Part shown: positions 3,201 through 34,208 of the stretch, one piece after another | How positions within the stretch are numbered: position 1 is the first letter of the stretch | How the letters are laid out: each line of letters starts with the position of its first letter | Origin: Adineta vaga | Taxonomy: Eukaryota > Animalia > Rotifera | DNA: 64,000 nt | Assembly (NCBI GenBank): GCA_021613535.1 | Contig: CP075494.1 | Span: 14,818,001 to 14,882,000, forward strand | Direction: 5' to 3' | Translations under genes and position numbers: made by a program | Notes under the pieces: generated by a model | What the model was told of the DNA's origin: nothing | Seen by the model: the letters and a program-made list of their open reading frames with translations, nothing else | Databases searched by the model: none

Positions 3201-5977
3201 CGAGAAGAGAAAAAATGCAAGAATTCCTTTCTTCTCTCCTTTGTCTATTGACTATCGTCGATGGTTGCGAGTTGTTATTGTACGAAATCATAATGATAAT
3301 AAGAAGCAAACAAATGTATCTTTTTATGAATCGATCTTTGTCGTCGTTTTTCTAAGATCTGATCGATATGCGTCGACGACAACGAACAATAGCAACTGAA
3401 ATTCATGTAAACATGAATTCCAATGAGAAGATATCTTCGACTATTTCACCTATATTTTCGCATCGTTTGATTAATCTTTCGCCTTTATTATCACTTCGAA
3501 ATCAAAATCTTTTCGTAGGCTTTTTCTTTTCTTGTCTGTATCATAAAGATCTTTCATTTTTTCTTTTGCTTCCCAGCACATATCTCCGACGTCTGCTTCT
3601 TCTGTGGATCGATTGGTAAGTAAAAAGATCATAAATTTATTTCGATTTTTTTCTATTGATTTCTTCAGGGATCTTTTGGATCATCATCAAATGTTGGAGC
3701 TACTGGAATGTCGGATTCGACATCATTACAGCGAACAATTACGACAGGAAATAATCATATTGGTAATACATCACCATCAAATTCATATTCATGGAATTAT
3801 GAAAGTTCAGTGACGATCTCGACAAATAATGACGATGAATGTTTATCTGGATTAGAAATTGATGATAAACCATTAATATATCGTCAACAATTTCAATCAT
3901 TTGTAGGATAAAACAATTCTCTTATAGATATTTATCATCTTTTTACTTTATAAGGATCATTCGAATTGGTATGGAATCAGTGAAGCGAACGGTCCTATTA
4001 TTATTTCATATAAATATGCTAATGATCAAGATAAACAACGATATATAATGGCAATTGTTCGGTTCGTATTTCTTGAAAGTAAATATTTAACAGTTCATGA
4101 TTAGTCAATTTTATTATCTAGAACTCGACAACGAACATATGTTGAACAATTATTCGATATACCAGTATCATGTTTTTCATTAGATATCTTACGTCGAATA
4201 TGTGATCAATGTGCTTTGACTGATATTGAATATTTCGATCCGGTGCTTTGTGATGGGGTAATTTTGAACGCAAAGAAAAAAACAAATCATCAAGATTATT
4301 TTCTTTCTTTTTATCAGACTCGTGATCTTCTTTTGAAATATGATGAATCACATGTATCTAATCAACATAAATTTGGTATTATTTATCAACGTACTAATCA
4401 AATGACTGAAGAAGATATATTCAGTAATGAAATATAGTGTAGCAATGAATAGATTTCTTGATCTAATTGGTGATCGTGTTAAACTCAAAGATTTTCAAGG
4501 GTAAATTATCATTTCAAATCAAGAATTTTATTTCAAAGAAAATCTTTTCTTTAGATTTCGTGGTGGTCTTGATAATAAATCTGATCATACAGGAACGGAA
4601 TCTATCTATGAAAAATTTCATAATCATGAAATCATGTTTCATGTTAGTACATTATTACCACATTCGAAAATAGAACGACAACAACTTGAACGTAAACGAC
4701 ATATTGGAAATGATATTGTTTCGATTATTTTTCAAGAAGATGAAACAATTTTCAATCCCGAATGTATCACATCACAATTTTTACATGTTTATCTCGTTAT
4801 AACACCATTAGATTCTAATGGAAATCAATATAAAGTAGCCATTATTCATCGTGATAGTGTTCCATCATTTGGACCAGTTTCGAATTCGTCAAAAATATTT
4901 CAATGTGATCAAATATTTAAAGAATGGTTATTAACAAAATTGATCAATGCAGAAATGGCGTCATGTCGATCGAATACTTTTCAAAAATATCAAGTAGAGT
5001 TGTTTTGTTTTTTTTTGTAAATTTAATTTTTCAATGAAATGAAATTCTTTTAGGAACGTACAAAAATGAATTTATTCAATAATCTTTATCGAACATTACA
5101 CGATAATAATCGACCATATATGGATTTGATTCTTAATCATAGTCAATATAAACATGAATGTGAATTAGAACAACAACGTGAAGATTCTTCACCGAAAACT
5201 TATGATCGTCATATAGATAATTCTTTACTTGGCTCAATGAAACGTCGTCTTATCGCACCGAAATTACGCGTACAACATGCAAATCCATCAACACCAACGA
5301 CTTATATTATCACATCATCGACAGTTAATAATACAAATGATCCGAAATTAAAAGTACGTTCATTGGCCGATGAGATCAAACGAAGTGTCTCGAAAGAATC
5401 AGTGATATCAAATGGAAAAATAACATCCATATTTTCATCATCGAAGGTAACGATCGATAAGACTTCTCTATCACAATCGATAAACTTAAATTTTTAGAAT
5501 CAAAATTCCAAAACCGATAAATCAAATACAAATCGTCCGGTATTAGAATCGGAAAATTTCGATTCATCTTCAAAGTAATATATTCTATGTTCATCATCTT
5601 TTCATTAGAAATATCACCTTGATTCTCGTTCTAGTACAAAATGTATTTCACCAATTTCGAATGATAATTCAAATAATGTTTCCACAACACTCAATTCGAA
5701 TAATTCATCATCTGATGATATTGATTCCGATCAATTTTCCTACGATTATCTTCAATCTTCATCAAAAGATGGTTTGAATCTCATCTAAAATAATCTTAAA
5801 AAAAGTCGAACTTTTCCTTCTTATCATTTAGAATTAATCAAATGCATTCAGACATTACAACAACAAAATTCCACAAAATTAACTCAATTAAATCAAATGC
5901 ATTCTCAAACAGTTCAACAATTGAAAACTCAATTGATTAAACAACAAAATTCATTCGACAAAGACCTATTATCATAG
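293..5977 (+). CDS. RAP1GAP: Rap1 GTPase-activating protein (Rap_GAP domain), multi-exon; apparent frameshift at ~4432-4437
   Basis: Spliced exons give HKFGIIYQ..QMTEEDIFSN, FLDLIGDRVKLKDFQGFRGGLD and IMFHVSTLLP..QQLERKRHIGNDIV (catalytic Asn motif), plus WLLTKLINAE and a C-terminal coiled coil ending TAG 5975-5977. 5' exon structure is uncertain: exon 293-492 joins exon 2224 in phase, and other first exons are possible. Confidence 0.85.
1527..1553. repeat. (TTC)n microsatellite
   Basis: Run of TTC/TCT triplets in an intron. Confidence 0.8.
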
Positions 5978-6440
5978 AAATTATTCTCCATTCTATCTAC
6001 TCCGTCCTTATTATTAATGTAAATTATCGATAATATCTTCTATCATAATATTAAGATTGAAAAAATCTCATTGTTTTGTGTTCATTAATCTTTGTATTAT
6101 TATTATTTATCTGTCTTTGTTTTTATTTCAGTGATTGAATATCATCGAAAGTTCGATAAATGTAAAAATAAATTTTCAATTTCAAACAAAATTATTCTCT
6201 TTTTTTTGTTTCCAATGTTATTCTATTCTTTGTTTTTCTTGTAAACAAGAGTACAATGAACAGTGCTAGATGACATAACGAATGTTTTTGAAACACAACA
6301 AATCAAGACATGGAAGAAACAGAGAGAGAGAAAGAGAGAGAGAAGAAAAATCTAATAATGAACAAATGTAACAATAAAAAAAGAAGAAACCGAAGAATGT
6401 CTAATTACGATATTGTCATATTGAAGATATTTGCCGTTGT

Positions 6441-6803
6441 TTATTCATTGTATTTTTCTTTATGATTAAGTAAATATTCAGAAAGAAAACTAATTGGTTT
6501 TGCAGGTCGTTCTTTTGCAAGTTGAGACATGGCTTGAAGAAGAATAGGAACAACAGTTTGATCCAAATAGGCTCGTGTTGGTAATGTTGATAAATCGGGT
6601 TTGGTTTTATCAGTTGATTGTTGCGAATTGCTATTATTTTCCTTAGTCGTATCCGATGTTGTTGTTTTCTCATTATTGGATTGTGGTTCACTTGAATCAG
6701 CTGCTGTTTGAGCTTCCATTTGTTCCGATGTTGTACTTACAACATTCTTTTCACCCGATTCATCAGCTGGTGTTTGTGCATTTTCACCTGAAACTTCAGA
6801 CAT
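6441..6803 (-). CDS. DPY30: Dpy-30 homolog, tandem copy A
   Basis: [38 protein letters not shown] is the Dpy-30 dimerisation motif; acidic disordered N-terminus; intronless. Confidence 0.92.
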
Positions 6804-31143: not shown

Positions 31144-32957
31144 ATGACTTTTCTAAATCCAATTAAAGCAATTATTTTCTATCTCATGGTTATACTTGGA
31201 ATTTGTTTTAATCTTCTTTTTGCTATTACACCGGCTGTTCCATTTATTTTTCTTAACCGACGATTTTATTTACGTTGGTGTTCTTTTGCATTGGGTTATT
31301 ATCTTTTAATGATTACAGTTGAGATTCCTTTCTTTCTCAATCGGACAATTTTCATTCAACGATATTTTTCTATATTTTTCAGTGTCTTCTGGAAGATTTA
31401 CTTGGAATTAAAATTATTCTTACAGGAGACGATTTAACAAACGATAAGACTCGTTCAATTATAGTTTTAAATCATCGAACACGACTTGATTGGTTGTATG
31501 CATGGACATTACAAAGTCGATTTCAAATTCTAAGTCAATTGAAGATTGTCATGAAAGCCGGACTAAAAAGTATGCCGGCATTGGGTAAGATTAACTTGTT
31601 TTGTTTTTAATTTGCACAATACATTCTAATTATTTCTAAGGTTGGGCATGTCAACATGCGGGTTATCTTTTTCTTCATCGTCAATGGGAAAATGATCAAG
31701 AAAGAATCAATAATATTATTGGATATTATAAATCATGTCAATCACCACTTTCCGTACGTATTTTGAACGTCTTTAAAAGCTTTTTGCTTAAAATATGACG
31801 CGTTCGAAAGAGAATTCTACCATCTAATTGATTCTTTTACGTATTAACTATCTTTTTCTAGATCGTATATGAATAATTCATTTTTTCCGAGAAAATAATG
31901 GTAGTGAAATATTGATTTACACTTACGAGAAAATGCTTTTAACTAAACTTCCTTTATTTCTAATCTATTTGCATGTTAATCTAGTCTAGATAATTAGATT
32001 TCGATATTATCTGCATGGTAATCTAATATCGTTCATGTTTGAATGAGAAGTTTTCTAGTCGTTTCATTTTTCGAAATTCAATGAGCAAGAAAACGTTTAG
32101 CTCGTGATAGTTTAGCTGTTTTGCATGTTAGTTTCACCTTGAATTATGTTAATTCGATTGGAAAAGAAAATTATTTTTCCATTTATGGTAGTTATTAATC
32201 TTTCCCGAAGGAACAAATTTAACCAATGAAACTAAAATTAAAAGCAATAATTATGCGTCGAAACAGAAAACTTATAATCGAATTTATGAATATTGTCTTC
32301 ATCCACACGTCACTGGATTTGCATATTTAGTAAATGCAATGCGATCAAGTAAAGATAAAAAATTTCATTGATGTAAGATTTATTTCATTTGATTTAGATG
32401 ATATTGTTGATGCGATTGATGATGTAACGATTGGTTATGAAGGACAATTTCCAATAACAGAACTTGATTTATTAAAAGGTCGTTTTCCAAAAGTTGTTCA
32501 TTTTCATATAAAACGTTATAATATCAATGAATTACCACAAGATAGTGAACAAATCGGTGATTGGTTACGGAAATGTTGGGATGAAAAAGAGAATCGTTTG
32601 AAAGAGTAAAACAAGATTGAATTCGTAATTGAATTTGAAAATTTTCATTAATATTTTAGATTTTATGAAAAAAAGCAATTTGATTCACCAACGAAACGAT
32701 TGAATAATGAACGAATGGAATCTACTGTACGATTTCAACGACGTTTAGCATTAGTTATATGCACATTATTCATTCTATTTTGGTCATATTGTATCATCGC
32801 ATTCGTTAAGATAAAATTTTATGTTGTCTTAGTTTGTATATTTCATTGGGTGATGGAATCTTATACAAATGGTGTCATTGATTTTGTCTGTCAACTTGAT
32901 GCAAACTATCGACGACAACAACAACAACAACAACAACCAGCAATTAGACAGGACTAA
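31144..32957 (+). CDS. LCLAT1: Lysocardiolipin acyltransferase 1 (AGPAT family)
   Basis: NHRTRLDW (HX4D), LKIVMKAGLK..PALGWACQ..YLFLHR.W..D, LLIFPEGT, LHPHVTGF, DVTIGY. Confidence 0.9.
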
Positions 32958-33111
32958 AATTGAATCTCGTAAATGATCTGCCTATTTGTTTCTGTTTTTT
33001 TTCCATAGATCTTTATTTGCTCATAAATATTTTTAATCATTTTAGAGTATAATTTTTTTATAATTAAGAAAATGCTTTCTTCCGATTTTAGATAAAACAA
33101 CTCTAAGAGTT

Positions 33112-33702
33112 ATGCAGATCTTTGTGCGTACTCTCGATGATCGAACATTAACACTCGATGTTCAACCACAAGATACCATCAATGAAATTAAAGAAGTTGT
33201 TGAACAACGGGAAGGTAAAATCAAAAAGTTTTCATTTTTTGAAAAAGTTTCTATTCTTTTACAAATTGATTAGGTATCCCGGTTGATGAACAACGTTTAA
33301 CATTAGGTGGAATTTCATTAGATGATGAATTAACACTTACGGAATGTCGCGTTGAAGATAAAAGTACACTTCACGTTTTACTCGATCTTGAAGGTGGTGG
33401 TAAAAAACGTAAGAAGAAATCTTACAATACACCCAAGAAGAATAAACATAAACACAAGAAAGTCAAATTGGCTGTTCTTAAATATTATAAAGTAAGACAT
33501 TCAATTGATTGAAAAAACAAACAAACATTCTTGATCTGTTTTTGTTCAGGTTGAAGATTCAGGTAAAATTCGTCGTTTAAGACGTGAATGCCAATCAAAA
33601 CAATGCGGTGCTGGTGTTTTCATGGCTGCACATCATGATCGTAATTATTGTGGCAAATGTTGTGTGACATATATGTTCAACAAACGTGAAGAAGAACAAT
33701 AG
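33112..33702 (+). CDS. RPS27A: Ribosomal protein eS31/S27a fused to a divergent ubiquitin-like domain (3 exons)
   Basis: Exons 33112-33214, 33274-33491 and 33550-33702. Ubl ending LDLEGG, then [38 protein letters not shown]...[16 protein letters not shown]. Not in the ORF track. Confidence 0.96.
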
Positions 33703-33885: not shown

Positions 33886-34208
33886 ATGACGACAACACAA
33901 ATGAAAACACCATTAAATCCAAGACCTTATATTAATGAATTAGTTGGCAAAAAGATTCTCGTTCGACTTAAATGGGGAATGACATATACCGGTAAATTGA
34001 ATTCATTAATTAATCATCTTTTTTTTCTTTTCTTTTAGGTGTTCTTGTTAGTGTTGATCAATATATGAATGTTCAATTAGGTCATGCTGTTGAATATATT
34101 GATGAACAAAATAAAGGTCCATTAGGTGAAATTCTCATTCGATGTAATAATATTCTTTATATATCCGGTGTTGATGAAGCCGATGAAGATGATGATGCAA
34201 TGGCATAG
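33886..34208 (+). CDS. SNRPF: Small nuclear ribonucleoprotein F (SmF)
   Basis: [45 protein letters not shown]....[14 protein letters not shown]; one intron; not in the ORF track. Confidence 0.95.

Follow-up and report, generated by a model that had tools for sequence, protein, structure and literature searches.

The fusion of ubiquitin to the ribosomal protein eS31 (S27a, encoded by RPS27A) is among the most conserved gene fusions of eukaryotes. Why the two are joined is debated, the explanations being ubiquitin supply or chaperoning. Within ubiquitin, R72 and R74 are recognized by UBA1, and the same two residues are read by most deubiquitinases (DUBs). Diverged ubiquitin-like (Ubl) leaders on 40S proteins are already known, from FUBI-eS30 and from the UBL-1/S27a fusion of nematodes, whose leader is reportedly a diverged ubiquitin-like domain (work of Jones and Candido in 1993). 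The ubl-1 gene is named as an RPS27A homologue elsewhere, yet it is described there as encoding a ubiquitin copy (PMC10556562). In yeast, ubiquitin is a cis chaperone for eS31, and Ub-eS31 that stays uncleaved assembles poorly, is unstable partly via ubiquitin-fusion-degradation and disturbs translation initiation (PMC8122580). The Giardia Ub-eS31 is naturally uncleaved, and its di-glycine is disrupted (PMC8122580; PMC11354881). FUBI is 36% identical to ubiquitin, keeps the C-terminal di-glycine and has a single lysine, the equivalent of K27, with no known chains. An intact GG is needed for the USP36-dependent removal of FUBI, and this removal is required for 40S maturation; there are reports that FUBI becomes conjugated to protein partners, although the conjugating enzymes have not been identified (PMC8354635).

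Here we describe an animal RPS27A gene whose leader is no longer ubiquitin. The window, by which we mean the whole stretch of 64,000 nucleotides that was analysed, comes from the bdelloid rotifer Adineta vaga (C5:14818001-14882000, in an assembly of 100.8 Mb and six contigs). Its RPS27A (eS31) gene lies at 33112-33702 on the + strand and has three exons, and the spliced product is 157 residues long when the splice sites are read from the sequence. The features are as follows.

33090..33091, + strand: spliced-leader (SL) trans-splice acceptor AG; GCTTATTACAACTTACCAAG directly precedes 33090 in a cDNA-like contig
33092-33111, + strand: 5' UTR of RPS27A, between the trans-splice acceptor and exon 1
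33112..33214, + strand: exon 1, translated as Ubl residues 1-34 and the first base of G35; Pfam ubiquitin positions 1-32, E 4.3e-7
33215..33273, + strand: intron 1, 59 nt, GT..AG; skipped in contigs of four runs
33274..33398, + strand: Ubl part of exon 2, residues 35-76, ending in LDLEGG; Pfam ubiquitin positions 34-70 over the first 37 residues of exon 2, E 2.5e-9
33381..33398, + strand: charge-reversed tail LDLEGG (residues 71-76 of ubiquitin are LRLRGG), with presumed cleavage after G76; identical in 88 fetched relatives
33399..33491, + strand: eS31 part of exon 2, translated as a lysine-rich N-terminal extension that begins GKKRKKK
33492..33549, + strand: intron 2, 58 nt, GT..AG; joint from 33491 to 33550 in three runs
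33550..33702, + strand: exon 3, the eS31 zinc-ribbon domain and the TAG stop; Pfam Ribosomal_S27, E 1.4e-18

The architecture is that of an RPS27A gene, with ubiquitin (PF00240) in exons 1 and 2 and Ribosomal_S27 (PF01599) in exon 3, and the exons are joined in cDNA-like contigs. Positions 33112-33398 hold exactly a 76-residue Ubl and intron 1, so the spliced gene model bears out the domain length given in the first-pass annotation. The eS31 part carries a four-cysteine zinc ribbon with a C..C / C..C pattern across exons 2 and 3, and it reaches 88-98% identity between named bdelloid species and 72-78% against other animals. Its GKKRKKK extension is identical in the second copy of the gene on C2, the ohnologue, and near-identical in canonical Ub-S27a proteins.

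The end of an acyltransferase gene (32700-32957) lies upstream of RPS27A in the window, and an Sm F / SNRPF-like gene (33887-34208) lies downstream. The order acyltransferase, RPS27A, Sm F recurs in Rotaria sordida, whose gene models run RPS27A together with either Sm F or the acyltransferase, and the same order of neighbours is seen in one bdelloid-like contig with an LSM gene downstream of RPS27A. One cDNA-like contig spans the 3' end of RPS27A into Sm F, which does not by itself demonstrate a single transcript.

To describe the leader we took as the reference ubiquitin a unit of this genome's own polyubiquitin locus L013. The leader is identical to it at 37 of 76 positions, made up of 36 whole-codon positions and the split-codon G35, in agreement with the earlier hand count. 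All substitutions that the first-pass annotation had listed were found again in this alignment. Six of the seven lysines are lost (K6R, K11R, K29V, K33R, K48I and K63D) and K27 is kept, the Ile44 patch is broken (I44T, V70L), and the tail has become acidic at both arginines (R72D, R74E) with the di-glycine (G75, G76) kept. The leader retains L8, H68 and L73 of ubiquitin; H68 is Tyr in most relatives, and the window copy has an extra lysine at position 64, where nearly all relatives have Glu. Its net charge is -11, compared with 0 for ubiquitin. Ubiquitin proper is defined as near-invariant, with seven lysines, the L8/I44/H68/V70 patch and LRLRGG, and the window leader falls outside this definition. 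Because six lysines, I44, V70, R72 and R74 are missing, it is not a source of ubiquitin.

The fold appears to have been kept. An AlphaFold2 model, computed from an alignment of bdelloid Ubls with the Adineta steineri sequence (P0154:1-76) as the first sequence, has a mean pLDDT of 91.9 and the strand and helix order of ubiquitin, with less confidence at the last residues. The best Foldseek matches of this model are ubiquitin chains (TM 0.86-0.95). By sequence, the closest solved protein is likewise ubiquitin (about 70 bits and E about 1e-18 for a single unit), and hence the leader descends from the resident ubiquitin of RPS27A and not from FUBI.

Is the gene used? We called contigs cDNA-like from the absence of introns, none of the runs being recorded as RNA. 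Positions 33215-33273 are skipped exactly in such contigs from four runs and 33492-33549 in contigs from three. Another set, showing 7-20 differences, corresponds to the C2 copy and covers its 5' UTR as well; both S27a copies are thus represented in spliced form. The concern of the first-pass annotation that this copy might be unexpressed is therefore answered by spliced cDNA-like contigs, with an SL attached.

In one contig, GCTTATTACAACTTACCAAG stands immediately before 33090 and is missing upstream in the window. The leader sequence has at least 59 genomic copies, many of them paired head to head at a distance of about 150 bp, followed by AG/GTAAAT, and a multi-copy leader with a GT donor is the signature of spliced-leader RNA genes. 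Since the leader is joined at AG 33090-33091 and encoded elsewhere, this AG is the trans-splice acceptor. The exact SL pattern with leading GG had no match in the genome; when mismatches were allowed, the genomic leader was seen to begin GCTTATT, and the extra G's are therefore read as additions at the cDNA 5' end. The RPS27A mRNA accordingly bears the rotifer spliced leader GCTTATTACAACTTACCAAGAG, which presumably matches the published bdelloid SL; an example of an SL gene is at G000:C1:2551162-2551182 (L051), and there are about 58 more places.

A six-frame search of the 100.8-Mb assembly for Ribosomal_S27 returned two loci only, the window gene and C2:2436036-2436155. The C2 ohnologue (L001) has the same three-exon structure, an acyltransferase gene upstream, the LDLEGG tail and K27 as its sole lysine. 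No canonical Ub-S27a was found in the assembly, both PF01599 loci being of the LDLEGG type, and the suggestion that a canonical copy might exist beside this one was thus not upheld. The window RPS27A is a functional eS31 gene, one of two S27a loci and not a spare copy. Ubiquitin itself is intact elsewhere in the genome: there are several polyubiquitin loci (115 bits per unit) with canonical units identical to one another, and two Ub-L40 loci with canonical ubiquitin exons. The divergence is therefore confined to the S27a fusion. In the nine-unit polyubiquitin locus L013 (G000:C3:11608718-11610745), one unit no longer matches ubiquitin beyond residue 61 and continues for about 70 additional residues with no stop before the next unit, which could reflect either a frameshift in that unit or an insertion that keeps the frame.

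Relatives were gathered by a HMMER search with exon 2 and by word searches seeded with the returned proteins. LDLEGG followed by GKKRKKK was found in 88 fetched proteins, and the species with this tail are A. ricciae, A. steineri, R. socialis, R. magnacalcarata, R. sordida, Rotaria sp. Silwood1, Rotaria sp. Silwood2 and Didymodactylos carnosus. The named bdelloid relatives are annotated merely as "unnamed protein product" or "ubiquitin-like domain-containing protein". One relative has LDLDGG followed by A, with an LSM gene just downstream of its RPS27A, as in the window. The GG is invariant in all bdelloid leader sequences examined. The first-pass annotation had considered that the tail and the lysine losses might not be conserved in relatives, and we find both kept across Adineta, Rotaria and Didymodactylos.

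Column and charge tallies were made on 23 distinct Ubl sequences from three genera, with the two halves of each Ubl rejoined and G35 inserted. Of the 76 positions, 39 are invariant in this set, and at 27 positions a residue other than that of ubiquitin is conserved in at least 80% of the sequences. The arginines R6, R11 and R33 never vary. All the sequences share one lysine, K27, which is the sole lysine in 20 of the 23; further lysines occur at 48, 60 or 64 without being conserved. The net charge ranges from -11 to -16. The Ubl of D. carnosus retains I44 and K48, yet the new tail and the other lysine losses are already present in it. If D. carnosus is the deepest-branching sampled bdelloid, as we take it to be, its intermediate state means that the new tail arose before I44 and K48 were lost. 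Molluscs, arthropods and vertebrates from the same searches carry canonical ubiquitin on S27a, and the canonical state of molluscs and arthropods supports a lineage-specific change. Representative and word searches recovered no monogonont, seisonid or acanthocephalan RPS27A, the named matches being bdelloids and distant phyla only, and the literature yielded no sequence-level information on these groups. As far as sampled, the LDLEGG clade is limited to bdelloid rotifers.

Selection on the two parts of the protein was estimated by the Nei-Gojobori method on whole codons, exon by exon. The segments analysed in the window were 33112-33213, 33276-33491 and 33550-33699; search queries were single exons or database proteins, and the split codon (G35) was omitted from the selection statistics. 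Between the window gene and the C2 copy, dN/dS is 0.19 for the Ubl (dN 0.072, dS 0.37) and 0.026 for eS31. The values are 0.16 and 0.051 between the window gene and a metagenomic bdelloid locus (L037), and 0.24 and 0.045 between the C2 copy and L037. The Ubl is under purifying selection, which is weaker than that on eS31.

These numbers bear on the simplest alternative, a relaxed or decaying copy in which the Ubl drifts neutrally and has no function beyond not disturbing eS31. The Ubl does evolve about 4-7 times faster than the eS31 part relative to dS, as such drift would have it. However, the dN/dS values of 0.16-0.24 in the three pairs are not about 1, and the 39 invariant positions have held over three genera. 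The predicted fold is intact, K6, K11 and K33 have consistently become Arg and not random residues, and there is no canonical copy to take over. We give drift a negligible chance, and the neutral decay that the first-pass annotation had allowed for did not hold up. A pseudogene or neutral decay as such is ruled out by the two-locus inventory, the spliced expression, dN/dS and conservation.

What, then, does the leader do? A useful comparison comes from the same genome, which has at least four eS30 loci (G000:C5:9797631-9797951, L043; G000:C2:8792595-8794053, L044-L046; and G000:C5:962323-962568). In the C5 and C2 copies examined, the eS30 leader has 75 residues, starts with MQIFVR, contains two lysines, has a net charge of -13 and ends in KLFGG, followed by KVHGSL. 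The ohnologues of this leader differ by a dN of 0.088 with a dN/dS of 0.11, and the S27a Ubl ohnologues by a dN of 0.072. The S27a leader is thus like the FUBI-type leader of its own genome in charge, lysine content and rate. As in FUBI-type leaders generally, it is a beta-grasp Ubl with GG at the junction to a 40S protein and a lone conserved lysine, K27; with a single lysine at this position it would, as for FUBI, form no chains. The first-pass annotation had proposed a lineage-specific change into either a FUBI-like leader or an orthogonal modifier. Its FUBI-like half is supported, since the K27 lysine, the charge and the divergence match the eS30 leader, and its modifier half found no positive support.

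We consider it probable that the bdelloid leader is a cleaved, E1-incompetent, FUBI-like cis-chaperone leader on a working eS31 gene. According to this model, the ubiquitin of RPS27A would have evolved in place into a folded beta-grasp domain that is strongly acidic (-11 to -16), is nearly lysine-free with no lysine at the surface, and has a non-basic tail with the GG kept. The precursor is translated from an mRNA that the contigs show to be SL-trans-spliced and intron-spliced. We hypothesize that the acidic Ubl serves as a folding and solubility chaperone in cis for the extremely basic eS31, its acidity neutralizing the polybasic partner; this role is carried over by analogy from yeast work on real ubiquitin. 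A USP-type protease would then cut after LDLEGG, most plausibly one that already processes the rotifer FUBI-like-eS30 precursor with its KLFGG tail. Since the arginines at 72 and 74 that UBA1 reads have turned into Asp and Glu, the freed Ubl presumably does not join the ubiquitin pool. The loss of lysines (K6, K11 and K33 to Arg) and of I44 may shield the precursor or the free leader from ubiquitylation, and so from ubiquitin-fusion-degradation, or from ubiquitin receptors. Free ubiquitin would come from the canonical polyubiquitin and Ub-L40 genes. Some points speak against the model. Even for a Ubl tail it is unusual to have acidic residues at both 72 and 74, which could impede ordinary deubiquitinases, and the invariance of 39 of 76 positions would seem to exceed the apparent needs of a passive solubility tag.

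In an alternative, the acidic tail blocks deubiquitinases and the Ubl remains part of the 40S subunit, as an additional, permanent domain of eS31. R72D and R74E remove residues that most DUBs read, and lysine loss together with a DUB-resistant tail would suit a leader that is never removed. There is a precedent in the naturally uncleaved Ub-eS31 of Giardia (PMC8122580; PMC11354881), and lysine loss would guard an uncleaved fusion from the ubiquitin-fusion-degradation route (PMC8122580). However, the GG is disrupted in Giardia and invariant in bdelloids, the similar FUBI-type leader is cleaved (PMC8354635), and uncleaved Ub-eS31 assembles poorly in yeast and disturbs translation initiation (PMC8122580). 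Moreover, the N-terminal extension of eS31 is unchanged and therefore presumably occupies its usual place. A retained domain is, in our view, unlikely.

The conservation of the Ubl could also be explained if it were an orthogonal modifier, released from eS31, activated via LDLEGG by a dedicated E1/E2 and attached to targets in insulation from the ubiquitin system. In this case the invariance of GG and of the whole tail and the conservation of many surface positions would be expected, and FUBI has been reported to be conjugated to partner proteins (PMC8354635). The genome also holds a candidate enzyme: next to a strong pair of UBA1-type E1 loci (C6:9.536 Mb and C3:6.923 Mb) there is a second, weak and divergent UBA1-family E1-like pair at C5:3.527 Mb and C2:3.626 Mb. 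These divergent E1-like genes lie within G000:C5:3523000-3532999 (L049; minus strand, about 4400-6600) and G000:C2:3621000-3630999 (L050), and L049 matches UBA1 better than UBA6 among PDB entries. However, in alignment the divergent gene keeps an Asp in the column of the SSSQD/SSSRD Asp of UBA1, and its cysteine is shifted to one position after the catalytic Cys column. In the structure of yeast Uba1 with ubiquitin, the SSSQD Asp is said to pair with R72 of ubiquitin, and an enzyme that keeps this Asp would therefore not favour D72. No E1 with a basic (inverted) pocket was found among the UBA1-type loci.

The source of the Ubl also speaks against a modifier. It is encoded solely as the two eS31 fusions: the genome search returned no free-standing or tandem Ubl gene, the C-terminal Ubl half matching the two S27a loci only, and the next-best matches were canonical ubiquitin at 46% identity. 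Furthermore, all features of the Ubl are matched by FUBI-type leaders, whose conjugating enzymes remain to be identified (PMC8354635). We therefore regard a modifier as rather improbable, and it is still more doubtful that the bdelloid Ubl is a true orthogonal modifier whose LDLEGG would be recognized both by an E1 that co-evolved with it, possibly that of the C5:3.527 Mb / C2:3.626 Mb gene, and by a co-evolved protease. If a modifier did exist, it would provide bdelloids with a tagging system coupled to the ribosome that neither ubiquitin enzymes nor tryptic di-Gly proteomics could see.

With the cleaved FUBI-like leader as the preferred reading, the bdelloid gene speaks to the debate on why ubiquitin precedes eS31. 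Throughout an animal clade the fold, the exact leader length and the Gly-Gly junction have been retained, and the lysines, the I44 patch and the basic tail have been discarded. The leader is a natural separation-of-function experiment, which argues that the job of the eS31 leader needs no ubiquitin signalling. It also reveals the traits that are selected once such a domain leaves the ubiquitin pool, namely acidity, the replacement of Lys by Arg and a kept GG, and Didymodactylos, with I44, K48 and the new tail, gives an ordered series of steps. In addition, the leader predicts a protease that is able to cut after an acidic tail.

The bdelloids are not alone in having such a leader. Other diverged Ubl-S27a fusions came up with the tails PSLVGG or PTLPGG (P0278 group), LSLIGG (P0351) and IDLLGG (P0324), and the loss of ubiquitin identity on eS31 is therefore recurrent and not unique. 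The proteins with such leaders (P0278, P0284, P0290, P0322 and P0349, loci L038-L041; P0351, locus L042; and P0324) come from eukaryotes in metatranscriptome/Logan contigs of about 1 kb. The leaders of the P0278 group, P0351 and P0324 retain GG and no longer have R72/R74, and the rotifer spliced leader was not present on their contigs. A literature search found no description of the bdelloid LDLEGG S27a leader. From the sequences compared, what appears notable in the bdelloid case is the doubly acidic tail, the clade-wide conservation and the Didymodactylos intermediate.

How does the locus compare with the described systems? It is the same gene as the canonical Ub-eS31 fusion (RPS27A, yeast Ubi3) and has the same architecture, with a leader of 76 residues, a GG junction and an eS31 part in common. 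It differs in a leader that matches ubiquitin at only 37 of 76 positions and lacks six lysines, I44, V70, R72 and R74. Nematode UBL-1 of Caenorhabditis is alike in being an S27a leader, reportedly diverged, in an animal lineage. Given the distance between the phyla and the canonical ubiquitin of molluscs and arthropods, we infer that the bdelloid leader arose independently of UBL-1. In Giardia lamblia, too, the ubiquitin moiety of eS31 is out of the ubiquitin pool, but there an interrupted di-glycine goes with a fusion that is not cut, whereas the GG is invariant in bdelloids.

The closest parallel is FUBI-eS30 (FAU), in which a Ubl leader likewise precedes a small, very basic 40S protein with GG at the junction. 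Like FUBI, the bdelloid leader is acidic, is without the R72/R74 pair and carries a lone lysine in the place of K27; FUBI is 36% identical to ubiquitin and the bdelloid leader 49%. However, the bdelloid partner is eS31 and not eS30, the gene is not a FAU orthologue, and the leader comes from the resident ubiquitin of RPS27A and not from FUBI. The tails differ as well, the S27a leader ending in the doubly acidic LDLEGG and the rotifer's own FUBI-like leader in KLFGG. Judged from sequence, the bdelloid eS31 leader appears to be an independent second instance of the arrangement that FUBI represents on eS30.
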